Below are positions 31,901-61,953 of a stretch of DNA of 64,000 nt, piece after piece. The DNA is taken from the NCBI RefSeq assembly GCF_947568905.1, contig NC_079164.1, positions 39,618,001 to 39,682,000 of the forward strand, in the 5' to 3' direction. Position 1 is the first letter of the stretch. Each line of letters begins with the position of its first letter. The notes under the pieces are model-generated. The model did not search any database. It was not told where the DNA came from and saw only the letters and a program-made list of their open reading frames with translations. Source of the DNA: Ostrea edulis. Taxonomy: Eukaryota. The position numbers and the translations under genes were made by a program.

Positions 31901-32049
31901 GTTTATACGAGATATCAACACTAGTACATGTATCAGTGTAAAATATTTCCTCTTATCTAGCTCTATTTTATGTGTCATAACTTGAAATGTTTTTATCAGA
32001 TATTAAATTCAAATGTTGTATAACGCCCCCCATACTATAAAACGTTTAG

Positions 32050-32221
32050 ACAGCTTCGGAATTTAGATTCAAAATGGAACCAGATTGTCCATCAACAGCA
32101 GAAGCATGGAATGAAAAGTCTACTGAAAGAGCTTGCACCCCAAAAGGAAATTACCATTGTATGCAAACACAGGATGGTAAAGTGATTGAACTGTGTAAAA
32201 ATCCTATCTGGATAGAAGCAG
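32050..32221 (+). CDS. Cys-rich ectodomain/TM/STAND-NTPase gene, first recovered coding exon
   Basis: tttag|ACA..., with an alternative acceptor 4 nt downstream. Reads TASEFRFKMEPDCPSTAEAWNEKSTERACTPKGNYHCMQTQDGKVIELCKNPIWIEA-G|gtatgt (phase 1). Confidence 0.8.
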
Positions 32222-32417
32222 GTATGTACAGTTGTATCCCTTATTAGTTAGACCAGTATGTTGAGGTTTTTTCAAAACGTTTTTTATTTACCATACTCTC
32301 AATCCATGGATAAAATGTATGTCGGATTGTTTATCTAAATTCATTACTTCTGCATTATTTACAGAACACAAACGTCATACTATTTCCAGTTTTCAAACGT
32401 TTTTTTTTTCCTTTAAG

Positions 32418-32528
32418 GTAAATGTCCCATCTACAATAAAGCGGGAATGTTGGATTCCACGTCATGTGTATCACGACCGCCAAAACCGTGTCCATCAAAC
32501 GCTTACAAATCCAATACAGTCTTTAAAT
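32418..32528 (+). CDS. Same gene, Cys-rich exon 2
   Basis: ctttaag|...T|gtaagt, 111 nt, phase 1-1: GKCPIYNKAGMLDSTSCVSRPPKPCPSNAYKSNTVFK-Y. Confidence 0.82.
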
Positions 32529-32980
32529 GTAAGTGTTAAACCCCCCATTCTGAGTATGGATGCACGCAACAGATTGTGCTCTCTGTGTTAATGTAGTCAA
32601 TATAAAAGTTACAGCATTTGACACAAGTAAAGGTTTTGTGCTAGCTCTTGTTTCCCCTTCATAAAGGAAGATATTCACGGCAATAATATTCCTAAACTAA
32701 AACACTCACCGAAGACATTGGTGAATTTTCTTTTCGGACGACCTGTACATTCTTCATAAGGAACAAGAAAGCTCCATAACTCAATAACAAACCTTACCTT
32801 CTCTGTGGCGAAAGAGAAAGTTCTCGACTTAAGTAACACACTTTTCTTTCTGTCTCTGCAGAAAGAGAAAGTATTGTATGATGAATTTGTTGTCTTCTTA
32901 ATTTGTATATTACAAGTGATATTCATGAACTATGATATAGTAGTTTAGATTCTGTTTGATATTGAATTATTAATTTACAG

Positions 32981-33005
32981 ACCTAGCGTGTTTCCCAGAG
33001 AAGAG
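32981..33005 (+). CDS. Same gene, 25-nt microexon (YLACFPEKR)
   Basis: ttacag|AC...AG|gtaggt, phase 1-2. Needed to bridge the phases of the flanking exons and supplies the eighth ectodomain Cys. Confidence 0.72.
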
Positions 33006-33146
33006 GTAGGTGATACTCAATGTATTGTCGGCCATGAATAATTATGTCTGAAATGCCCATTGTTATGATTTTTAAAATAAAATTCAAAGAATAAGAGTTG
33101 GTCAGAAATTGAAAATTCAATATTTATCATTTTATAGTTTTACAAG

Positions 33147-33340
33147 AATTTCTTCAACAACTAGCCGAGGTGTTAACCATGCTGATCAACAACAAAACAC
33201 ATCAACAATCAGAACGAGTACACATGACGGGGGAGCTGGTCCGGAGCTACTGGCGCTAATCCTTCTCATCATTCCTGTGGTTATTGGTGTTATCGTTTTC
33301 TTACAAAGAAGAGGGTACATCAAACGATGGCGACGAAACA
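33147..33340 (+). CDS. Same gene, Ser/Thr-rich stalk plus transmembrane exon
   Basis: tttacaag|A...A|gtaagt, phase 2-1: ISSTTSRGVNHADQQQNTSTIRTSTHDGGAGPE-LLALILLIIPVVIGVIVFL-QRRGYIKRWRRN. Hydrophobic helix followed by a basic stop-transfer cluster. Confidence 0.85.
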
Positions 33341-33449
33341 GTAAGTATACATTGTATATCAGTTTTATTCTGTACTTGTTATGAGTTATATATTTTAAGA
33401 TTATTTTGGATGATACTACTCTATCAATTCTTTTCATTTGTCTCTGTAG

Positions 33450-33509
33450 TCAACAGAAGACGTCATCCTGAGAATATCACGGAGGAATCTGCAATACCTT
33501 CACCTACTG
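33450..33509 (+). CDS. Same gene, cytoplasmic linker exon
   Basis: ctctgtag|...G|gtcaga, 60 nt, phase 1-1: INRRRHPENITEESAIPSPT. Confidence 0.72.
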
Positions 33510-33664
33510 GTCAGATTCTGTTCATGAATATCAAACATATTTATACAGAGTTTGGGTTCTATCAGATATTTATTTTCTAACTAAGCAAATTCTGTCACAT
33601 CGAAAGGACATGTGTACGATATTGTATTTATCTTATACAAATAATTAATTGTGATATCTTATAG

Positions 33665-33742
33665 GTACAAACGTTGAGGACGACCATGGCGAGGATCAAG
33701 CGTTGATACGTACTAATGACACTCCCAATCTGTCAGTTGAAG
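33665..33742 (+). CDS. Same gene, cytoplasmic linker exon
   Basis: ctttatag|...G|gttgat, 78 nt, phase 1-1: GTNVEDDHGEDQALIRTNDTPNLSVE. The donor is weak. Confidence 0.65.
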
Positions 33743-33929
33743 GTTGATATAAAACGATTCTCTAAACATTTCGATAATGTTGTAATCAGATCAATGTTCG
33801 AATTAGCCAAGGTGAAGGGATATTTGTTTAGAACCAATTTCCGTAATACTTGTGGATAAATCCACACCTGTAGACATCCTCTCAACACCAGGTTAAATCC
33901 AACAGATAATGTAATTAGCTGTCCTTTTC

Positions 33930-34240
33930 CATAGAAAGGTATAATTCTATGGTCGTTATAACGATCTAGTTCGTCAATACAACCTATCCTTGGGTCAAAT
34001 GCTGTCTGACGTATTAAGCCGTTCTTGGCACACTGATTTTGACTACAGATAACTCCATTTACCTGATCAGGATATAGGGCTCACGGCGGATGTGACCGGT
34101 CGACAGGGGATGCTTACTCCTCCTAGGCACCTGATCCCACCTCTGGTGTGTCCAGGGGTCCGTGCTTGCCCAACTATCTATTTTGTATTGCTTGTAGGAG
34201 TTATGAGTTTGATCACTGTTCGTTATCTTCACCTTTCATT
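33930..34240 (+). mobile_element. Penelope-like 3' segment
   Basis: Shared motif ...cacggcggatgtgaccggtcgacaggggatgcttactcctcctaggcacctgatcccacctctggtgtgtccagggg...gatcactgttcgttatcttcacc. Confidence 0.75.
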
Positions 34241-35590
34241 GTAAATTGCTTACATAATCTACTGTGTCGGATTAACTGGCGGCAATACTGCATGCTATGG
34301 TAAGTCATATTGTAGTTTTTAAAATCTTTTATTTTGAATTCCTTTTTTCCTGACCAGGCCATGCTAATATTCAGCCCAAAACTTGGATGTACCGTAAATC
34401 AAAGAAGGACTTACTCCCAATGTACGTAAAGTTAGGTTAAATAATTTCGAATGTTGACAGTCTAAATCTGCGTAGTTACAATTTTGTAAAATAAATATAG
34501 CAAAAATGATTCGATATGATATCAGTACCATGCAAGAATACTTTCGTGAAGCCTGAATATTTTCCGATCTATCCCAAAGTGAAAGAAGACGCCATGTACA
34601 TTTCAGTCACTAGGCCTAACAGCTTCGGTAATTATCGTTTCGTTTAATGATAATGTTTATGATAATAATGTAAAACTACCAAAATTGTACACAGTTTTTA
34701 AGCAACGATGCAATGAAGATGCTTTGTGAACGACTTTAAAAGATGAAAACAACTAGGTATTGAAAATGAACATCTATAGGCCTAGTAAAAGGGCAAAACA
34801 AGCTGCAACCGAAAACTATTATTAGGTGAAGGAATTTCCCTTGCCTTAAACATAAACACCGAACTAAAATGACCTATAGAATCTACATGACACGAAATAA
34901 AGAACGTAGTTTCTTTCTTCATAAGATACTTAAATCAGCCATATTATCTGTAAAATTCAAGTTTATTACCACCAGCGCATTAACCGTAATATTTTTCAGA
35001 AATCCGGAATATCGTTTTTTGAAAAATAAAAATGGTGCTCCTAGCTCACCCTAAAATATTTTTGCATTGATGGTCAATTGAAAAGGTGTATATTATGAAA
35101 ATACTTTAAATATTTTGGGCGAGATGAAACCAGTATGGCAAAACCTTTACAAAGTAAACAGTTTTTGGTGAAAAATGACAAAAATACAGTACCATATCTG
35201 GTTCTACTATGTATACAGCTTTAGTTGTGGTCTTATTTTTAAAATCTAACATGTTTTTTTAAACCCCGGATTCTGATACATACTTATAACACCAATACTC
35301 CTATTCAACATTTACTTTCATTTTTATATATTTTAAGGGCCATATTTTGGGGTTTGTGAATCAGGTTCTTTTCTTATTCTTTTACTCCATATCTTATCTG
35401 TGTCTAGAGGAGGAATCAGATATAAAACATAATCCAGAGAACGTACTTTGTAGTGGAAGAAGCAGGCAAAATCCTTACTCTATGACATTGTATAATACAT
35501 ATCTCTGTGTTGGTTATTTCTAATAGCAATGATATTTTTGTAATTAGAACTAGCGTCTTTGATACCTTTTAACTAAATAATTATATGTAG

Positions 35591-35671
35591 GATCTGATAC
35601 AAATGTCATCCATCGACCTGGCGAAAATCAAAGTTCGGGAAGTACAAAAGAAATTAATTCAACTCCCAAAG
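35591..35671 (+). CDS. Same gene, duplicated linker exon A
   Basis: atgtag|...G|gtatgt, 81 nt, phase 1-1: GSDTNVIHRPGENQSSGSTKEINSTPK. Confidence 0.7.
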
Positions 35672-37200
35672 GTATGTACAAATACCCAAGAACAATCATC
35701 ATACATTGTAATATTATAAACTCGACAATCATTGAAAAAAAAAAACTTCAATTTATTTTAGAATATTTAGTAAATACAATTATGTATATCACATGCAAAA
35801 TGGGATTCTTAAGGTAGATCGATCCTCGTGTGATGACATAGGTTTTTGCATAAACTTTATCAAATTAAACTTTGCACGTGTTAGAAATATATCTTTTAGA
35901 GGAATTTTATTCACTAGATATAATAAAAATATGATAAATCTATTCATAGTGAAAAAGTTTATATTTTCCATAGATGATTATGTATAAGGAACACAGTGCT
36001 GTCAAGGGCAATGACTCCTATGCTGGTAGTTCCTCTACTGTATGTCTATTATACAATAATCTCCCTAATATCCACAATTAATTTATACATATTTATATAT
36101 TAACAGTTTCTCTAAACTGTTTACATTAAAAAAATTCATTTCATTAAGGTATTCAATGTATAATGACCATATCTCATATCTAATAAATGGATGGTGGAAT
36201 ATATGTAATCATGGTATCATTTTGAAGGGTTCATCAAATAAAAATAATCCACCGTAGGAATTTTCAAAATTTTGTTTACTGCTCGATTTATTTCACCTAG
36301 AATTTAACATTGAAGTATATGGGGAAAGCATGTTTTATTACATATTTTAAAAACAAATTATATTTTCATACTAATCTCTTGGTAGAAAGTTACGTACACA
36401 CTTTCTTTTTATGAAAATATGAAATAAAATAAATCATTGACCACACACATTGTTAGAAAATTAGAGTTTTCTTATTTTTACAAAGGTCAGACAACTCTTC
36501 CCAAAAGTCTTAAGTGCAAAAAGGTCAGCTTCTAATCATTTATCAGTCATGTGAATTTCATCTGCTTCACTTTCATCATTATTTAACAATAAACTTTTAT
36601 GTTGATCTAAATCCTTCAAAATTGTTTATTATTATCTTTTTATTATACATGAAATACCTTAAAAAGTATGTCATTTTAACATTTTTTTATCTATGTTTTA
36701 TTATTCTGTTTTAAGAAAATGTGTGTTTTTGTATGTCTGACATATACATTTTCTTTGGTTATTAATTAAATTAAGTTACATTGAGTGAATATTAATACAG
36801 TTTTTCCAGTTTCAACCATTGATATTGTTAAGTCACAGGATAGTGGAGCTACCTTAAGTTAAAGTCTCCCAAATATTCATACTCTGAGATCGCTATTGAC
36901 GAAAGAACGTTTTTAGTGTTCCAACAGGACATTATGTTGAATTGGAATTGATATTGTACATGTATAATTGACTGAACAAATTCACAGATTATTCATTATT
37001 TATGCGAGAGAAATTCGTAAAATTGCATTTTTGGTAATTAATATATTTATATTATCATTATATGGTGATGTTCACATTATCCCATCTATGACATTGATAC
37101 GATATGATGTATCTGTTTTGTTGTTGGTTATTTCTAATGAAACTTGTATTTTTGTAAAAAGTAGCCTTTATGATAGACATTATTGAATAGTCATTTGTAG

Positions 37201-37287
37201 GACCTGAAATGACTGCCATCCAGCAACCGCCTGCTGGAGACAATCAAAGTTTGGGAAGTACAAAAGAAATTAATTCAACTACCAATG
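37201..37287 (+). CDS. Same gene, duplicated linker exon B
   Basis: tttgtag|...G|gtatgt, 87 nt, phase 1-1: GPEMTAIQQPPAGDNQSLGSTKEINSTTN, paralogous to exon A. Confidence 0.7.
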
Positions 37288-37419
37288 GTATGTAAAATGC
37301 ACAAGAACAATCATCATGATTTACTAAAGTATATCAATAGTACAAACTATTTAATGAATTTAGACAATCATTGGAAAAATTTCAATCTTATCTAAAATAT
37401 ATAGTAAATACAAGCAAAT

Positions 37420-37990
37420 ATATGAACGGTGAAGATAACGAACAGTGATCAATGAAAGATAACGAAGAGGTACATGTAACAAATAACGAACAGTAATCAA
37501 TCTCATAACTCCTATAAGCAATACAAAATAAAGAGTTGAACAAACACGGACCCCTGGATATAATAGAGGTGGGATCAAGTGCCTAGGAGAAGTAAGCATC
37601 CCCTGTAGACCTGTCACATCCGCCGTGAGTCCTATGACTTGATCAGGTAAACGGAGTAATCCGTAGACAAAATCAGACAAGCCAGACACCATTTGACTCA
37701 ATGATAAGTTATATTGGCAAACTAGTTCATTATAACGACCATAGAATTTGCGAAATGCTGACTTTAAACGAGACTGTTGAATCCCTATAACATCAACTTT
37801 GTCGGTAGCCATCCTCGATTTAGAAACTGCCCAAACGCAGAACAAGCTCTTGTGTATCGAGTCAATTGAGAGATATGAAGACCAAATGCAGGTGATATTG
37901 GAATATTGCTATATAGATATGGAAAGTTGACGATAGAGAAGCTGAAATCATCCCGTTTGTAATGAGTTGTTAGTTTGCTGTTATTACATG
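37420..37990 (-). mobile_element. Penelope-like 3' fragment inside the intron preceding the NTPase exon
   Basis: ORFs YKRDDFSFSIVNFPYLYSNIPISPAFG..QLTRYTRACS and SAFRKFYGRYNELVCQYN, followed by the shared 3' segment. Confidence 0.8.
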
Positions 37991-38327
37991 TATCCATTTA
38001 CGAAGCAGATATGGAGGATTCACATGCAAAATGGGATTATCTAAGTTAAAGTGTCTGAAGTTGGTTATATTCCTACTTTGAGATCGTTGTTGATGAAATA
38101 TTATTTTTCGAGTTCAGACAAATTTAATTCATTTTGTAGTAATTGTCTGAGAAATTTATAAAATTTTTATCGTTTATGTGAGAGAAAGTCGTAAAATTGC
38201 ATTTTTGGGGTATTTAATATATTGTTCATTATCTGGTGATGTTCACATTATCCCATACACTTTTGTTTCTATTGAATGTTATTCATCAAAATGTGACATT
38301 GTTGATATGCATTATCTCTCTTCACAG

Positions 38328-39469
38328 AACGGCGTATATACGTGAATATGGCGAACTTATCTTTCATAGACAAGATGGCAAAATCACTGTTATCTCTAAA
38401 TATCATGGTGATTATTGGATTACCTGGAAGTGGAAAGACTTCTCTCGTTTCCGAAACAGTTATGTTTGCTTGTCAAAAATTTACCACTAGTGCACATGTC
38501 CGGCACATGAAGGACATAAAAGAGTTAAAGGAAATAACCACGGACCAGAAAACTTTCCTTATACTGGATGAGTGTATCAAAAGTTGGTTCAATAAAAATA
38601 CCATTGCTACTTTACTTAAAAATGTTGAAAATGTTGTTGAAGCTGGAAAGGGAAAGATCCATGCATTGATATGTGTTCCAGCTACTATTTCAAAACATGA
38701 TCTCGAGGAGTTCCTAAAAAGTAGTTCTTTGCAAGATAAAATTTATGATCTAACCGTAGATGGGTACACCGAAGAAGACTGGGGAGCAATATTCGACAGT
38801 CATAAGCAAAGTAGAAAGGAATGGATCGAGAATCAAAAATACGAGAAAGGGGGCATCGTTAAATATAGGGAGGCTTACATTCAATGTAAAGCTAAACATA
38901 TAGGAAAAGCGACAATACCGTCTCTCCTCTTTGAAAACGCGTATTATCTAACGAGTGCTTTAAAATTTCTCGAAAATCCATATGACTTGATGTTGCAGCG
39001 AATCAATGGTTTATCCAAATCAAATAGCGGATCTGATGTTCGTCATTTTGCTGCTCTCGTAATTCTCATGTTGCACAATGGAAAAACAAACATTCGAGAT
39101 ATAAACAAAGATATGGTCACTGAACTATGTCAAGTTTTCAAAGTGGAGAATTTTTCATTGTCTCACGACTTACAGCATGAAGACGTGGAACAGTATGGAG
39201 ACATTGTCTCAATACACTGCAGAGAAACAGTTCGTGTCACATTTGATGTTGTTTGGAAGGAGAGAAAAGATTTGATCATCAAATACTGTGACGGTGAATT
39301 ATTTTTGGAACGCGTCTCCTTATATGGAGTGAAAAAAGTTGATCTCCTCGCAATAAACGATCGCTTTCAAACGATTATATCAGCTGGAACGCCATACGTA
39401 TGTGAACACAGTATTTGGGAAGAGTTACGAGCGAAATGTTCTACTTTTAAAAAACAACCGCGTTTTTGA
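38328..39469 (+). CDS. Same gene, terminal exon: STAND-like (nSTAND3-type) P-loop NTPase plus helical region
   Basis: Acceptor cttcacag|AA is in frame with the 375-aa ORF 38342-39469. Walker A VIIGLPGSGKT, Walker B FLILDE, then helical segments (HFAALVILMLHNG; IIKYCDGELFLERV) like those I recognise from bivalve nSTAND3 proteins. The nine exons total 1950 nt (649 aa + stop). Confidence 0.8.
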
Positions 39470-40668
39470 CAAATGATTTTTGATAGCTCTTACTGAGTAT
39501 TTTGTGTAGTTGTTCAGTCTGCGATCAATATTTGACAGCGTTACTTATTTTCATAGGTCTATTAATGTGTGTTTTCATAATTATATAATTTATATGCAAA
39601 TGAATGCATACTTGACTGAAATTCTATTGAGCTACCGTGGTGCTTTTATTAGTGTGTGTTTTCATATTCCTAAAATTTGTATGCTTACCAATATTTGCTG
39701 TCCAGAAAGTAATTGAAAATAATGTATGCTCTGAACCAACAATATTTTCATTGTATTTGTATGTTAAATGGTTGAATCAGGTACCAATAAAGTTATGTTA
39801 TTGCATAACCAGTCAGTTATGGCTATCTCTATCTTTTAGAACGGCTAATTTGCAATAAATAGGATAGAAATTGGGAAGCAATGAAAAAATCCATCGAAAT
39901 TTTAAAGAAAAAAGTTTACTTGCCGGCCGTAACCTTAATATACTGTCATTTGGAAAGTAAAACCAATATACTGGAACATTTTATTTAACATCTAAGTTAT
40001 ACATAAAGCTACTTTTTTTTTATTACATATATCTAATGAAAATAGCTACAAGTGTGATCCGATATTTTACTGCCATATAATCACTCATCCGGATGATATA
40101 GGTCAATAGCAACAAAGGATGCAAGTCTTAATGAATATGTAACTACTATGATTTAACCAGCCTTTTAACACCCGGATAATGTAATATCCGTGTAGTACGA
40201 TAACATTACCTGTGTGAGTCGCACAGCTAATGTGATCCTTAGTATATCAATGGTCGCGAATGCACCCGCTAATGCAATCCCTTTCCAATGCACAAGTGAT
40301 TGACGATGTAGATATCACCTGCAATATCAACCGATAATATAATACATATCTTATTGTATGACGCTATTGCCAAACTGAGGTTGGAAGAGCACTTTTTAAA
40401 GTGGGATTAACTGGTGAAACTGCCACATTGCTTTTTAATTGGAATTACATTAGGTATGCGTTGACATCCTTGAAAGTTATCTTGGTAAGAAAAGCCAGAA
40501 AATCCGCGATATTTTCTCTAACCCTGAATGTGTATCATGTTGCGGTGAAAAGACGAAGACTATCGCCTTCGATTTTTCTCAAAGAAATAACGAAAACTAT
40601 AATCATGATTATGTGTATATACATAAACTAAATGATACCTTGCTATTCTTTATTTTTGGGTGAAATGA

Positions 40669-50684: not shown

Positions 50685-51240
50685 GGTGAATATAACGAAT
50701 AGTGATCAATCTCATAACTCCTATAAGCAATACAAATAGATAGTTGGACAAACATGGACCCCTGGACACACCAAAGGTGGGATCAGATGCCTAGGAGGAG
50801 AAAGCATCCCCTGTCGACCGGTCACACCCGCCGTGAGCCATATTTCCTGATCAGGTAAACGGAAGTATCCGTAGTCAAAATCAGTGTGCCAAGAACGGCC
50901 TAACAATCGGTATGAAACACGTCAGACAGCATATGGCCCAATGATAGGTTGTATTGACGAACTAGATCGTTATAACGACCATAGAATTTGCGAAATGTTG
51001 GCTTCAATCGAGACTGTTGAAATACCTGTACCATCAACTTGATTGTCAGTAGCTTTCCTCGATTTAAAAACTGACCATACGCAGAACACGCTCTTGCATA
51101 TCGAATCAGTTGAGAGATATAAACACCATATGCAGGTGATAGTGGAATATTGGTATATAAATATGGGAAGTTGAATATGGAGAAGCTGAAATCATTCCGT
51201 TTGTCATACAGTTGAGTTGTCAGTTTGCCGTTAATGTTAA
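50685..51240 (-). mobile_element. Penelope-like 3' fragment upstream of the NTPase pseudo-exon
   Basis: Colinear with 37420-37990 and 14400-14700. Confidence 0.8.
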
Positions 51241-51737
51241 AATCTTACTTTCTCTTTATTCAAAATATTTCAGAGCGATTTTGAGACACAAAACAAGTGA
51301 AGCTCAACGTCTGCCATATTTGTTTAGGAACAGTAGTGGTGCACCCGGATGTAGCAGTAAAATGAGGTCAAGGAGAACACATTTTATTGTTTGGTGACTT
51401 TTTATCACATTTGTTTTATGCATTATCACAATTTGTACATAGTCGATTATTTTGTCGCTAATTGTGCGCCATAACCTGTTTGAGAGAGTAACTATGTGCG
51501 CGTTTGAATTTATATTGTATTAATTGTCTTAAAAAATTAGGAGGATTGTCATTGTGTATCTGAAAAAAGTTTTAGAATTGCATTTTATCGTAATGCTAGA
51601 GGAATTAATATATTGGGCCTAGTTATCTAGCAAAGTAAACATTATCCCAAACACTTTCGTTTCTATTGAATTCCATTCTTCCAAATGTTACGTTAGATAA
51701 CAGAATCCATGTTGAAATGCATTATCTTTCGTCACAG

Positions 51738-52850
51738 AACGCCGCATACACGTGAATATTCATAAAAAGGATGGCAAAATCACTTTCATCTCTCATGTCG
51801 TGGTAAGTATTGGATTGCGAAGTAGTGGAAAGACTTCTCGCTGAACAAACTGTTATGTCTGCTTGTATTGTTTTTCTCAAGGAGGCAACCTTTTGGTACT
51901 TGAGGGACTTAAAAGAGTTAGACGGTGTAGATAGAGATAAGAACACTTTCCTTTTGCTGGATAACTGTATCAAAAGCTTGTTCAATAAAACCATTATTGA
52001 TGATTTGGTTCAAAAACTCAAAAAAGCAGTAAACACTGGAAAGGGAAATGCATATGTATTGATTTGTGTTCCAGACACTGTGTTAAAAATGTCTCAGAGT
52101 TCCTAATTAAGAGTTCATTGACATCTAAAATTTATGATATAAGCTCTAGCGAAGAATGGTGCCCCAAAGAAGACTGGGAAGCAATATTCGACAGCCATAT
52201 GCAAAGTAGAGAGGAATGGATCGAGAATCAAAACTGCCAGCAAAAACCATCGATAAATACAGAGATGATTACATTAAATGCAAAGCTGGAAATAGAGGAA
52301 AAGCGACAATATCATCTGTCCTCTTTGAAAACGGGTGTTATTTAAAGAGTGCTGTCACATTTCTCAAGAACTCATATGACTTAATGTCGAAGAGAATCAC
52401 GGATTTATTTGATTCGGGATGCAGTTCTGATGTTCGCCATTTTGTTGTTCTCGTACTTCTCATGTTACACAATGGAAAAGCAAACATTGAAGATAAAAAC
52501 AAAGATATGGTCCCTGAAATATGTCAAGTTTTCAAAGTGGAGAATTTCCCATTATTTCTAGACTTACAACATGAAAAACTGGAACAATGTCTCAATACGC
52601 TGCAGAAAAACAGTTCGTGTCACGTTTGATGTTGTTTGCAAGAAAAAAAGATCTGATCATCAAATACTGCGATTACGAATTGTTTTGGAACGCGTCTCTT
52701 TACATAGAGTGACAGAACGTGATCTCCTCGCAATAAACGAACGGTTTCAGTCGATGATATCATCTTGTACACTGTACGTAGGAAAACACAGTATCTTGGA
52801 AGAATTTCGATCGACATGTTCTACTTTTGATAAAGAAACGAGTTTTGACA
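51738..52850 (+). pseudogene. Decayed paralogous copy of the STAND-NTPase terminal exon
   Basis: Same acceptor context (gtcacag|AACGCCGCATACACGTGAAT). Homologous peptides are split over three ORFs (51810-52106, 52216-52629, 52571-52879). Walker A has degraded to GLRSSGKTSR* with several frameshifts. Confidence 0.85.
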
Positions 52851-53384
52851 CATATTTTGATAGCTTGTATTTTATATAGTTGTTCAGTCTGTGATCAAGA
52901 TTTGAGAGCGTTACGTATCGAATTTTCAAAATTTGTTTGTGATTATGGTATATAAACATCTTTTAGAGTGTATTTTCAAGTTCCTATAATTTACATGCAC
53001 GGCGGGTGTGACCGGTCAACAGGGGATGCTTACTCCTCCTAGGCACCTGATCCCACCTCTGGTGTGTCCAGGGGTCCGTGTTTGCCCAACTATCTAATTT
53101 GTATTGCTTGTAGGAGTTATGAGATTGATCACTGTTCGTTATCTCCACCTTGCATGAAAGTAAACGATGTATGCGCTGAACCACGAGTGTTTTCACTGTA
53201 TTTGCATGTTAGGTGGTTGAATCAACTACCAATGAGGTTGTATTATTAACTTGTCAGTTATGAAAAATTGTATCCCTAATTATGAATACGTTTTAGAACA
53301 GATGATATGCAATTAATAATATAGACATTGGAAGGACGTACGGAAAAAAATAAAATATCTTGCGAACTTAAAGAAAACAAACAA

Positions 53385-58148: not shown

Positions 58149-60879
58149 CTAAACTATGTCTCTAATCTGACTTTGTTTAGTCCAAGAATCACTAAGGGTT
58201 GCGCTTAATGTAACACCAAGATTCACAATAGCATCACTAAGTTCCTTAAAGTTTGAATTCTGGACCGAAATCTGATTACAAGAGTTTGACGACACGACAC
58301 TTTGCGGTAATTTAAACGGATTGGAATGTTTTCCAGCCGTTGTTCGTTTACTCCGGCGCGGCTGTTCTGGTTCAACGAACTCTTCGTCTGATTTGCGATG
58401 ACTCGACGACTCCTCAGCCTGGATCACTTCTTGTATTTGTTCTGGAATGTAATCACTATCTGAATCCTCCGTCTCGGAATCTTCACTACTAGCGGTCACT
58501 TTTTCACCAGTGTCTAAAATTTCCTTCCTAGTGACATTTTTTATTGGACCAGATCCATCCGCGAGTTGAATAGAATACACATTATCACCAAGATATTTCA
58601 CAACTTTATACGGAGTGGAACACCACGTGTCTTGTATCTTGTTGCGTCCAAGAACTCTGTTCTTCGTTAGAACTCGGGTTCCTATCGGAATAAATGAATC
58701 TGTAGCCTTTTTGTTCCTCTGTTTGTTCCTTTGTTCAGCCGATTTCCTCAGTTAGCGGATGAACACTCGTAGACTTCACACATCCTCTTTTTGTGACTCT
58801 CTAACCAATCATCAAAGGATACAGGTACGTTAGCATCACTACTTGACGATTTCCTGGTTACAAGGAGGAAGTCCACCGGTAAGACAGGTTCTCGACCAAA
58901 GAACAAGAAATGTGGAGAGTATCCCGTAGATGAGTGCACTGTGGAGTTGGATATATAAACCAACTCTGGAAGATACTCCGGCCATCTCTGTTTTCTTTCA
59001 GGTGGTAACGTTTTTAAGCGATCATGCATGGTGTGATTGAATCGCTCACATTGTCCGTTACCTTCAGGGTGATAAGGCGTTGTGCGTGATTTTTCTATAT
59101 GATAAAAATTACACAGTTCTCGGACAACAGAACTTTCAAAGTTTCGTCCCTGGTCGCTATGTATACGTGCTGGAACGCCAAACTTGACAAACCAGTCTTT
59201 AACAAGGATTTTTGCCACATTTGTTGCTTTTTGATCCTTGCAAGCTACAGCTTGCGTAAATTTGGTAAATATGTCCGTCATAATTAACACGTTTTCACGT
59301 CCATCTGACGACCTTTCCAACACTGTGAAATCAATAGCGAGAATTTCTAAGGGTTTGTATGCCATAAGATTGCTGACTGGGGGGTTAATGGCAGGAAGGG
59401 GAGCCTTCCCTATCAAACATCTCTCACAGGACTTGCACCATTTTTGAACATCTTGTAGCATGCTTGGCCAGAAACATCTTTTCTTTAGCAATGAATATGT
59501 CTTTTCAATGCCTTGGTGTCCCGCATAATTGTGAACACTCTGTAGAACTTTTTGTTTTAGAACTTCCGGAAGCAAAAGCTGATTCTGTTCTCCTGTTTCA
59601 TCCTGAATTTTCCTAAATATCACAGAGTTCTCAGCAAATAGTCTGTCTCTTTGATTAAGTAGTTTCCTGACACTTTTGTGCTCCTGTTTCAAGTCAGAAA
59701 CTGACGGTTTTGTTCCTGAAGTGCCGCAATGTCTGTTGGGATAAATTCAGGTAATGTAGCTGTCGCACACACGGAACGCAACTGAACGTTAGCTGCTTCT
59801 TCACTAATATAGTTCACGCTTCCCTTTAACACCTCCAACGATGTACTCTGCGTAATCCTGTTTAGAGTATCCACAACACTTTCTATCTCCGATGAAATAG
59901 GTCGTCGACTCAGAGCATCCGCATTTCGATTGACCCTTCCAGAACGGTATTTCACCGAGAAGTTGAACTGAGCCAATTCTCCGATCCAGCGCATTGTAGT
60001 TGCGTCGACACGCTGCTTGGTTTTGTGGATATAACTTAACGGATTATTGTCAGTATACACAATAAATTTCGATCCAAGAAGGTAGTCCCGAAATTTTTCG
60101 CTAACTGACCACTTGAGTGCTAATAATTCCAGTTTCATAGAACTATATTTCTCCATGTTTTTCTCTGCTTTCCTGGGTGATCTTAATGCGTAGGCAATCA
60201 CTACTTTACCATTTGGTGTCTCTTGCGACAAAACGGCTCCAAGACCTTCAAGACTAGCGTCCGTCTCCAAGATGAATTCTCGAGTGAAATCAGGAAATCC
60301 CAACGCTGGTGCAGTCGTAAGTCTCTCTTTCAATGTTTCGAATGCCTGAGTACACTCTTCAGTCCACAGTGCTTGAAATTGTTCGGATTTCAGTTTGGTG
60401 TTTTTCGGTTTAGACAATAAAGAATGGAGAGGAGATGCGATACTGGCAAATCCCTGTACAAACTTACGATAATAACTAGCCAGTCCAAGGAGTGAACGTA
60501 GTTGTTTTTCGGTGACTGGAATGGGCCATGATCGGATTACTGCTGTTTTATCTGGGTCGGTTGCAACACCGTTCTCGGACACAATGTGTCCTAAGAACCT
60601 AACCTCCTTCTGGAAGAAATGACACTTTGACATTTTCACTTTAAGTCCATGTAACTTAAGTTTGGTAAACACTTTGTCCAGTCTAAGAATGTGTTCTTCT
60701 ATAGTCCGTGAAAATACCAAAATGTCATCTAAATACAGAACAAGAATATCGAAGTTTTCATCACCGAGACACACTTCCATCAGTCTTTGGAACGTTGCCG
60801 GACTGTTACACAAACCGAACGGCATTCTCACATACTCAAACAGTCCTCCAGTTCCTACTCGGAATGCGGTCTTTAGAAT
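58149..60879 (-). pseudogene. pol: Gypsy pol remnant (partial RT, RNase H, integrase)
   Basis: ORFs 59689-60909, 58748-59692 and 58149-58601 are consecutive pieces of one polyprotein, separated by frameshifts near 59700 and 58750. Confidence 0.92.
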
Positions 60880-60897
60880 ATCCTGTCCACGACGCCA
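60880..60897 (-). promoter_or_regulatory. Primer-binding site, probably tRNA-Ser
   Basis: TGGCGTCGTGGACAGGAT, 2 nt inside the LTR. Its complement ATCCTGTCCACGACG-CCA resembles the 3' end of a metazoan tRNA-Ser. Confidence 0.75.
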
Positions 60898-60899
60898 TT

Positions 60900-61953
60900 T
60901 GTAACACACAAGTTCTTTTCACCTTTTATTCACAGTTGTAGTGTAATGTAATCAATCAATGAATCAATGACAGTGCTCCTATAAATATAAATAAATAAAA
61001 ACACATTATAATTTGTGCTAGTAACTTAACCAATGTACAAGATTTGGTTGACCTCAATCATATATACAAACATATTTCCTATGCAAGGATTCATATGTAG
61101 TACATGTATTATAAACATGCATAATTAGCAACATGAACAAATAGCAATTGCAAATTAGAAAAAGGTTGCGAATACGCAAAGTTCACAAACCTAAACAAGG
61201 CACACAATATCCGGCCCAAAAAATGATCACCACGACAGGTCAAGGTCAACGTAATACACTGATCACCTACATGTAGACCTATTAATAAAATAAACACTGT
61301 AAATACACTGAAACACACATATAACTCGAACACCGTTGTGTCACCAAAGTACATGTATGTAAAACTCAATTATATTCTCCCATTAAGTATAAATAGAAAC
61401 CATTAAGCTATAAACTAGTTCTCAGTTCTATATGTCTGATTAAAGCAAATGCTAAATATTGAATTCCGCTTCCTAACAGCATTGTTTAGCAAAGAATCTC
61501 CTACAATACCTTACATAGGATATAGTGAATCTATGCACTCAAAAAGGACAAATATATCACCAAAAACTTACACAACATCAGACACATCTTCGTTGTTCTG
61601 TATCTCGTGCAAAAATACCGCCAATAGCAGGTTCTATTATTACACACACTGATCAATCACTGACCGTCTTCATAAGTGTGAAAAATATTACACGAAATTA
61701 TTTTAACTCAACAAGAGATACTTTTACCCAAAATTAATAGAATATAATACTCTTCAAAGTCAATTATAATTAATTTTGCAATAATAATCAGACACACAGA
61801 ATACCAAAAATATCTACATAGTTGCAGAGTCTCAATGGCGCAGAGGTTAATGTCTACCGTCCATCATACGCGACCGACTCTCGGCACCCGGTTCGAATCC
61901 CATGTGATACAACTTATTTTTTTTTTTAATATAAAAAATGTTCTCCCCTTATA
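60900..61953 (-). repeat. Gypsy 5' LTR
   Basis: Direct repeat of 56939-58019 with a ~29-bp indel and roughly 15-20 substitutions by eye. The 5' terminus has mutated to TA. Confidence 0.92.

Follow-up and report, generated by a model that had tools for sequence, protein, structure and literature searches.

LOC130046425 of Ostrea edulis as a minimal variant of the cysteine-rich, transmembrane nSTAND3 receptor-like proteins of oysters

STAND/NLR-type switches are textbook cytosolic sensors. The gene considered here, LOC130046425 of the oyster Ostrea edulis, lies in a stretch of 64,000 nucleotides of contig NC_079164.1 (RefSeq assembly GCF_947568905.1, positions 39,618,001 to 39,682,000 of the forward strand; hereafter the window, whose own numbering is used unless another locus is named) and very probably places such a switch behind a membrane anchor, in the order eight-cysteine ectodomain, single transmembrane (TM) helix, low-complexity linker and nSTAND3-type nucleoside triphosphatase (NTPase). 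In its outer half the predicted product resembles BAFF-R, TACI and Fn14 in having a short cysteine-rich ectodomain on a single-pass protein devoid of a signal peptide, a type III topology known for BAFF-R and BCMA; unlike these small TNFR-type receptors, its ectodomain matches neither TNFR_c6 nor related Pfam families.

The closest described proteins are those of Kaur, Burroughs, Iyer and Aravind (2021, eLife; PMC8195603), who reported a receptor-like TRADD-N expansion of about 50 proteins in Crassostrea virginica. In that survey, which was anchored on TRADD-N and in which nSTAND3 was defined on bivalve proteins, oyster receptor-like proteins combine a cysteine-rich extracellular region and a TM segment with TRADD-N, nSTAND3 and ankyrin repeats, the cytoplasmic region being variable. 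LOC130046425 has in common with them a cysteine-rich extracellular region (compared by description), one membrane anchor and a cytoplasmic nSTAND3 domain, and its family, like the published expansion, is lineage-specific and shuffles modules of apoptosis and immunity (STAND, HEPN, AIG GTPase, ankyrin). Unlike them, it is devoid of a DED, of an NCOA6-clade TRADD-N domain and of the alpha-rich region, the place of which is taken by a low-complexity linker, as well as of ankyrin repeats and a signal peptide, and it measures 588-644 aa as opposed to about 2650 aa. Three LOC identifiers of the family and one protein accession are absent from the tables of PMC8195603, and the direct succession of ectodomain, TM helix and nSTAND3 with no TRADD-N, DED or repeats was not found in that paper or its supplementary tables. 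LOC130046425 is in our view a minimal variant of a receptor-like theme published in 2021; the initial annotation of the window, made from the nucleotide sequence, had presented it as a new kind of receptor, a claim that was overstated since oyster receptor-like proteins combining a cysteine-rich region, a TM segment and nSTAND3 had already been described there.

The sole experimentally studied nSTAND3 proteins that we found in the literature are the bacterial Avs5 proteins (AVAST type 5; 9nc9, 9jap), which form filaments. These cytosolic proteins join an N-terminal Sir2 effector to nSTAND3 and a C-terminal TPR/Sel1/PPR repeat sensor, whereas the oyster protein has neither effector nor repeat sensor and carries the ectodomain and TM helix in their place. 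With the classical switches Apaf-1, NLRC4, NOD2, plant NRC/ZAR1, MalT and SAMD9 it shares the fold formed by a nucleotide-binding domain (NBD), a helical domain and a winged-helix domain (WHD), and the Walker A and B motifs, and its histidine past the WHD hairpin may be a further common feature, although identity amounts to merely 8-14% in the top-ranked STAND alignments; unlike them, it has no LRR, WD40 or TPR sensor and no CARD, PYD, TIR or CC effector, and is anchored in the membrane.

Gene model of LOC130046425

Nine GT-AG exons on the plus strand (32074-39469) join into one reading frame, the splice product comprising 1935 nt, or 644 codons and a TGA, counted from the ATG at 32074. The exons are as follows.

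32074-32221, plus strand: exon 1, with the ATG and the first half of the eight-cysteine ectodomain (Cys 5, 21, 29 and 41), without a signal peptide
32418-32528, plus strand: exon 2, with ectodomain Cys 52, 66 and 74, in columns that are invariant or at least 90% conserved in 65 homologs
32981-33005, plus strand: exon 3, a micro-exon of 25 nt with the eighth cysteine (C90), conserved with its AG/GT sites in the paralogous loci L005 and L006
33138-33340, plus strand: exon 4, with the S/T stalk, TM helix and basic stop-transfer, free of stop codons and ending on a consensus donor
33450-33509, plus strand: exon 5, a juxtamembrane segment whose equivalent in the paralogs holds the ATG taken by NCBI as the start
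33665-33742, plus strand: exon 6, a low-complexity acidic linker
35591-35671, plus strand: exon 7, linker repeat A, a phase 1-1 cassette absent from isoform X2
37201-37287, plus strand: exon 8, linker repeat B, a phase 1-1 cassette absent from isoform X2
38328-39469, plus strand: exon 9, the entire nSTAND3 module (P-loop NBD, helical domain, winged helix with a recurrent histidine, C-terminal helices), with the TGA at 39467-39469

Exon phases are compatible throughout; every acceptor consists of an AG with a pyrimidine tract, and the donors, all GT, are mainly GTATGT, GTAAGT and GTAGGT, the others including GTCAGA and GTTGAT. The long open reading frame (ORF) of the gene is preceded on its 5' side by 265 codons without a stop, a run with a chance probability of about 4e-9 at the stop-codon frequency of the window (0.070). 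The initial annotation had likewise joined nine exons into one frame and placed the junctions 33742>35591>37201>38328 exactly where the rebuilt model has them; its length of 649 aa is corrected here to 644, a trivial difference, and its start at 32050 directly follows an in-frame TAG (32047-32049) upstream of the ATG. The NCBI model of isoform X2 (P0001, annotated as an uncharacterized protein) is 588 aa long, 100% identical and made of exons 1-6 and exon 9, so that an independent pipeline likewise links the TM exons to the NTPase exon. The two exons that it omits, exons 7 and 8, form a tandem pair 91% identical to each other; both of these phase-1/phase-1 linker cassettes are used in the NCBI models of the paralogs P0002 and P0003. 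A TATAAA at 32036, 38 nt upstream of the ATG, was considered as a promoter element and dropped, as it is not conserved in the paralogs. Two candidate signals lie downstream of the gene.

39786-39859, plus strand: two AATAAA hexamers, candidate poly(A) signals by motif only, 317-385 nt past the stop codon

The nSTAND3 module and the eight-cysteine ectodomain

The NTPase of LOC130046425 is a STAND domain of the nSTAND3 type with a complete nucleotide-binding oligomerization domain (NOD) module. Pfam nSTAND3 (PF20720) matches it over profile positions 8-152 of 155 and scores 37.0 bits (E 3.4e-9), well above the gathering threshold of 27.2, the second-best family reaching an E-value of 0.012, and the match is above threshold likewise in the paralogs and in 10 TM-anchored homologs; the STAND assignment made at the outset thus withstands a profile search that could have returned a non-STAND family. 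Walker A (GLPGSGKT, aa 295) and Walker B (FLILDE, aa 341 of the 644-aa model) are present as first read. Both glycines of Walker A occur in all of 30 sequences, and in an alignment of 16 the lysine is at least 90% conserved. Past the Walker motifs follow about 220 mostly helical residues, and the protein stops 380 residues into the last exon; ankyrin, TPR and LRR profiles find no match at E <= 1, in agreement with the initial annotation, which had seen no such repeats. Neither do the NACHT and NB-ARC profiles, so that the combination of NACHT or NB-ARC with LRRs by which an NLR is recognized is not present, nor, in P0001, those for DED and TRADD-N. The PADLOC defense models gave nothing significant for the protein.

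The AlphaFold2 model of the NTPase, built on a 30-sequence alignment, is confident (predicted local distance difference test score 87.6; predicted template modeling score 0.88) and begins with a P-loop domain of five strands; a helical domain and a winged helix bearing a beta-hairpin follow, and a short tail of helices ends the model. It thereby contains the succession of NBD, helical domain and winged helix, the NOD module, which sets STAND proteins apart from classic AAA+ proteins. In Foldseek searches of the PDB the top ranks went to NLRP7, NLRP2 and SAMD9; an archaeal AAA+ ATPase and Cdc6/ORC proteins came next, ahead of MalT, NOD2, Apaf-1, Avs5 and plant resistosomes. E-values in this search were just 1e-4 to 1e-3; the model aligns over some 300 residues, spanning all three subdomains, with MalT, NRC2, SAMD9, NLRC4 and Apaf-1. 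A sequence search of the NTPase against PDB chains returned generic P-loop/AAA matches only, midasin being the best. Two features recur in the family alignment, a GxP-like motif within the helical domain and, right after the WHD hairpin, a histidine that may occupy the MHD-like position. The former has the consensus IGxP, reads IGKA...IP in LOC130046425 and is kept as GKP in P0002 and P0004; the latter (VSIH, model residue 301) is present in LOC130046425 and several homologs and absent from P0053, P0059 and P0082. At the sensor-1 position, after strand beta-4, LOC130046425 (ALICVPAT) and its close paralogs have a proline and P0096, P0041 and P0084 an arginine. This arginine is typical of STAND proteins and is not required by the Pfam family; its replacement bears on catalysis, not on homology.

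The N-terminal part of the protein has the composition that had been proposed for it, namely an eight-cysteine ectodomain, an S/T stalk, one TM helix with a basic stop-transfer and a low-complexity linker. The ectodomain occupies residues 1-95, with cysteines at 5, 21, 29, 41, 52, 66, 74 and 90, and the S/T-rich stalk residues 96-131, with one NTS sequon at residue 115. The TM segment (about residues 132-152; Kyte-Doolittle 3.4) has eight K/R in the 15 residues after it and one in the 15 before, which by the positive-inside rule puts the N-terminus outside; from these features the product is predicted to be a single-pass protein of N-out topology. Between TM helix and NTPase lie 113 residues of low complexity, rich in N, T, E and S, forming a disordered linker made in part of the two duplicated cassette exons. 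The N-terminus lacks a signal peptide, a lack that is probably genuine because many relatives start alike, few residues ahead of the first cysteine; an in-frame stop also precedes the ATG in four transcript-like contigs of two homologs. The TM helix would then serve as a reverse signal anchor, no cleavable signal peptide being present. Some other relatives carry a clear cleavable signal peptide immediately ahead of the same domain, which indicates that the eight-cysteine domain is extracellular.

The predicted fold of the ectodomain, an alpha-helix and two beta-hairpins, has no match among solved structures, and residues 1-170 have no Pfam match at E <= 1. A TNFR identity was considered and rejected, the language-model feature scores (0.6-0.7) and fold TM-scores (0.40-0.45) being below the tools' reliability marks. 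The domain is an orphan folded eight-cysteine domain found so far in oysters and mussels only.

Paralogs and the bivalve family

A word-indexed homolog search with residues 1-170 returned the protein itself only, which reflects a limit of sensitivity, as an exhaustive phmmer search of 1.84 billion representatives then gave 120 ectodomain relatives at E <= 1e-3, 23 of them at E <= 1e-10. Across an alignment of 65 of these relatives, six cysteines are invariant and two at least 90% conserved, accompanied by a CP..T...W start and a YHC motif. The succession of ectodomain, TM helix (at residue 120-180) and nSTAND3 is found by Pfam in at least 10 independent 50%-identity representatives (P0015, P0053, P0059, P0081, P0082, P0084, P0096, P0098, P0100 and P0104) from Saccostrea cucullata, S. 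echinata, Magallana gigas, Crassostrea virginica and O. edulis, i.e. four oyster genera; all ten stop after the NOD module, without repeats. Other modules found behind the ectodomain-TM cassette are HEPN_DZIP3 with nSTAND3 (P0104), an AIG1 GTPase (P0058) and ankyrin repeats (P0087). In the ESM Atlas, mollusc clusters with the ectodomain fold carry nSTAND3 (806 aa, 78 members) or nSTAND3 and ankyrin (739 aa, 92 members), and a Mytilus nSTAND3 protein also bears this fold. LOC130046425 belongs to an expanded bivalve family in which an ectodomain-TM cassette is combined with interchangeable cytoplasmic modules of immunity and apoptosis. Two further database proteins were set aside: P0097 (570 aa), probably a chimeric model, continues past its ectodomain-TM segment into a complete kinesin motor domain, and P0078 (1150 aa), a PKD-repeat protein, has a weak and probably spurious ectodomain match.

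The linkage of TM segment and NTPase on transcripts, on which the initial reading depended, is seen in homologs. P0081, P0082 and P0041 are encoded by uninterrupted ORFs with untranslated regions on contigs of 2.2-2.9 kb, each assembled from a single sequencing run (three runs for P0082 and two for P0041). We take such contigs to be transcripts because oyster genes are split into many exons; the proteins they encode match, over their full length, models derived from the genomes of other genera. In all, four transcript-like contigs from three sequencing runs carry two proteins of this layout in uninterrupted ORFs. The ectodomain-TM-nSTAND3 layout is accordingly a family trait that is expressed in homologs.

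For the two closest paralogs in O. edulis, P0003 on the same chromosome and P0002 on an unplaced scaffold, the NCBI models are soluble, with lengths of 479 and 481 aa. Their loci, L005 (LOC130046552) and L006 (LOC125656503), hold all nine exons in the same order, including intact, in-frame ectodomain, micro-exon and TM exons 0.1-2.4 kb upstream of the annotated ATG (7669-10034 in L005, 7630-10034 in L006). These paralogous exons keep the eight cysteines and the TM helix, and their frame runs straight into the annotated start codon in the equivalent of exon 5. Because exons 1-5 are intact and in frame with the annotated start, the NCBI models most likely lack their 5' part, namely the ectodomain and TM exons. 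A further model, P0005 (135 aa), covers only ectodomain exons 1-2 of the paralogous loci and then runs into an intron.

Divergence among the three paralogs differs from exon to exon. Exon 1 of LOC130046425 is 62-63% identical to its equivalents in L005 and L006 and exon 4 is 94-95% identical to both at the DNA level. The ectodomain of LOC130046425 has a Ka/Ks of 0.28-0.31 against the paralogs at a Ks of about 0.8, and the NTPase a Ka/Ks of 0.47-0.62, with a Ks of the NTPase exon of 0.34-0.39 in all pairs; the stalk and TM exon is nearly identical among the paralogs (Ks 0.05-0.12) and by far the most conserved segment. Between the L005 and L006 paralogs, the ectodomain Ks is 0.018 and the NTPases have diverged. 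Since Ks differs in this manner between ectodomain, TM exon and NTPase, the mosaic suggests gene conversion or exon exchange in the cluster. The Ka/Ks values indicate coding constraint on both the ectodomain and the NTPase half, and LOC130046425 is a real gene under such constraint. The ectodomain is under purifying selection between paralogs (Ka/Ks about 0.3). An allorecognition receptor, a role that the initial annotation had entertained, would be expected to be hypervariable, and of this there is no sign, although three genes allow only a weak test.

About 12 kb downstream of LOC130046425 lies a degraded copy of its last exon.

51710-52865, plus strand: duplicate of the NTPase exon with part of the upstream intron, 81% identical with 26 gaps, many of them frame-breaking

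The ORF of this copy is spread over three frames, its P-loop survives as GLRSSGKT, and no ectodomain or TM exons were found upstream of it. The retention of part of the upstream intron and the lack of those exons mark it as a segmental pseudogene fragment rather than a retrocopy. We also note a dispersed repeat present in inverted orientation and at 88% identity in introns 6 and 8 of LOC130046425 (34033-34226 and 37483-37676), with similar ORF fragments near the pseudogene (50721-50906 and 52984-53249). A short ORF with the motif PPRHLIPPLVCPGV is common to the copies of this repeat, which is probably a transposable-element fragment. Farther on, three adjacent long ORFs of 150, 314 and 406 aa on the minus strand (58149-60909) lie in a GC-richer stretch.

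A proposed mechanism and its alternatives

By analogy with the behavior of STAND modules in Apaf-1, NLRs, MalT and Avs, we tentatively propose a receptor mechanism, to which we accord somewhat less than an even chance. An extracellular ligand, pathogen contact or cell contact would cluster the ectodomains and thereby bring the NOD modules in the cytoplasm to a higher local concentration, whereupon these would switch and oligomerize beneath the membrane in a nucleotide-dependent manner. As the protein has no effector domain, the oligomer would most likely act as the sensor of a sensor/helper NLR pair does and recruit or nucleate other proteins, for instance soluble nSTAND3 proteins or proteins with a Death fold or TRADD-N. 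Taken as a whole, the combination of a real gene, an N-out membrane protein and such a putative clustering-to-oligomerization receptor is the explanation that we favor and regard as moderately probable.

Several observations weigh against this explanation. No effector or adaptor domain that would point to the output of an oligomer is recognizable in the protein. LOC130046425 has other residues in place of the GxP proline and the arginine of sensor-1, so that its ATP hydrolysis and nucleotide sensing may be atypical. The exact sequence of P0001 was looked up among assembled transcript contigs, with no record found. A short ectodomain-TM isoform may exist too, since many members of the ectodomain family in the databases are ectodomain-TM proteins of about 178-220 aa and read-through of the exon-4 donor into intron 4, where the frame closes after 14 codons (33341-33384), would yield one of about 177 aa. 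Finally, the ectodomain fold has no characterized relative.

Among the alternatives, that in which the membrane-held nSTAND3 module senses a cytosolic or membrane-proximal cue, or regulates other nSTAND3 proteins as a decoy, the ectodomain serving for localization, adhesion or shedding, is the one that best survives, unlikely as we consider it. It accommodates a protein without an effector domain and the occurrence of the ectodomain-TM cassette with unrelated cytoplasmic modules, and very often alone, as expected of a generic anchor or localization cassette. The related clusters that combine the ectodomain with C-terminal ankyrin repeats speak for it as well, for they show that the ectodomain need not replace an intracellular sensor; the proposal of the initial annotation that sensing has been shifted outside the cell is a reasonable inference which these clusters qualify. 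A plain anchor, however, would have no need of 95 structured residues, and eight conserved cysteines together with a Ka/Ks of 0.3 at a Ks of 0.8 indicate a specific folded binding domain.

A different output would follow if the NOD oligomer bundled the TM helices into a pore or channel, as in the resistosomes of CC-NLRs, the TM helix itself being the effector in a membrane-damaging executioner. Such a protein would need no effector domain, and the strong conservation of the stalk and TM exon relative to the NTPase and ectodomain would be explained. The TM helix, however, is clearly hydrophobic and has neither a polar nor a charged face, the disordered linker of about 110 residues uncouples the geometry of a NOD ring from the helices, and the conservation of exon 4 is equally explained by gene conversion, all of which renders this reading improbable.

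We consider it very improbable that two genes lying head to tail, one for a short ectodomain-TM protein and one for a soluble nSTAND3 protein, have been wrongly merged. Such an error could account for the soluble NCBI models P0002 and P0003, which start at the exon-5-equivalent ATG, for the confinement of P0005 to ectodomain exons 1-2 and for the early closure of the frame in intron 4. Yet exons 1-5 are open and in phase with the downstream coding sequence at all three loci, exon 4 has no stop codon and a consensus donor at its end, and NCBI joined both halves at LOC130046425; moreover, collinear homologs are encoded by uninterrupted ORFs on transcript-like contigs from several runs and match the models of other genera from end to end. 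That LOC130046425 is a decaying, non-functional duplicate in a gene cluster of fast turnover, as the frameshifted copy of its NTPase exon 12 kb downstream and the substituted sensor-1 arginine and GxP proline might be taken to indicate, is hardly credible in view of its intact 1935-nt spliced ORF, canonical splice sites, eight retained cysteines and Ka/Ks of 0.3-0.5 against the paralogs.

Returning to the receptor mechanism, a more far-reaching version of it, which we regard as doubtful, is that bivalves possess transmembrane NOD receptors in which the eight-cysteine ectodomain directly gates the nSTAND3 oligomerization switch at the plasma membrane, with neither adaptor nor repeat sensor nor effector in the same chain. 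The membrane-bound NOD would then be the sensor that nucleates soluble helpers of the nSTAND3 or Death-fold type, and these proteins would represent an extracellular-sensing counterpart of sensor/helper NLR pairs.

The value of the present findings is tempered by the fact that the general theme has been published since 2021 and that function is only inferred. For annotation, they signify that two O. edulis paralogs have probably been modeled without their ectodomain and TM exons, and they add an eight-cysteine ectodomain that has neither a name nor a relative of solved structure. A conserved, expressed family with a STAND switch directly behind an extracellular domain would show that in animals recognition at the cell surface can be coupled to NOD oligomerization without a kinase, TIR or Death adaptor. 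It would also offer a compact model of about 600 aa for nSTAND3, a family for which we found experimental studies only of bacterial Avs5. With respect to oyster biology, a defined receptor family joins those considered as candidates in resistance to Bonamia, OsHV-1 and Vibrio.

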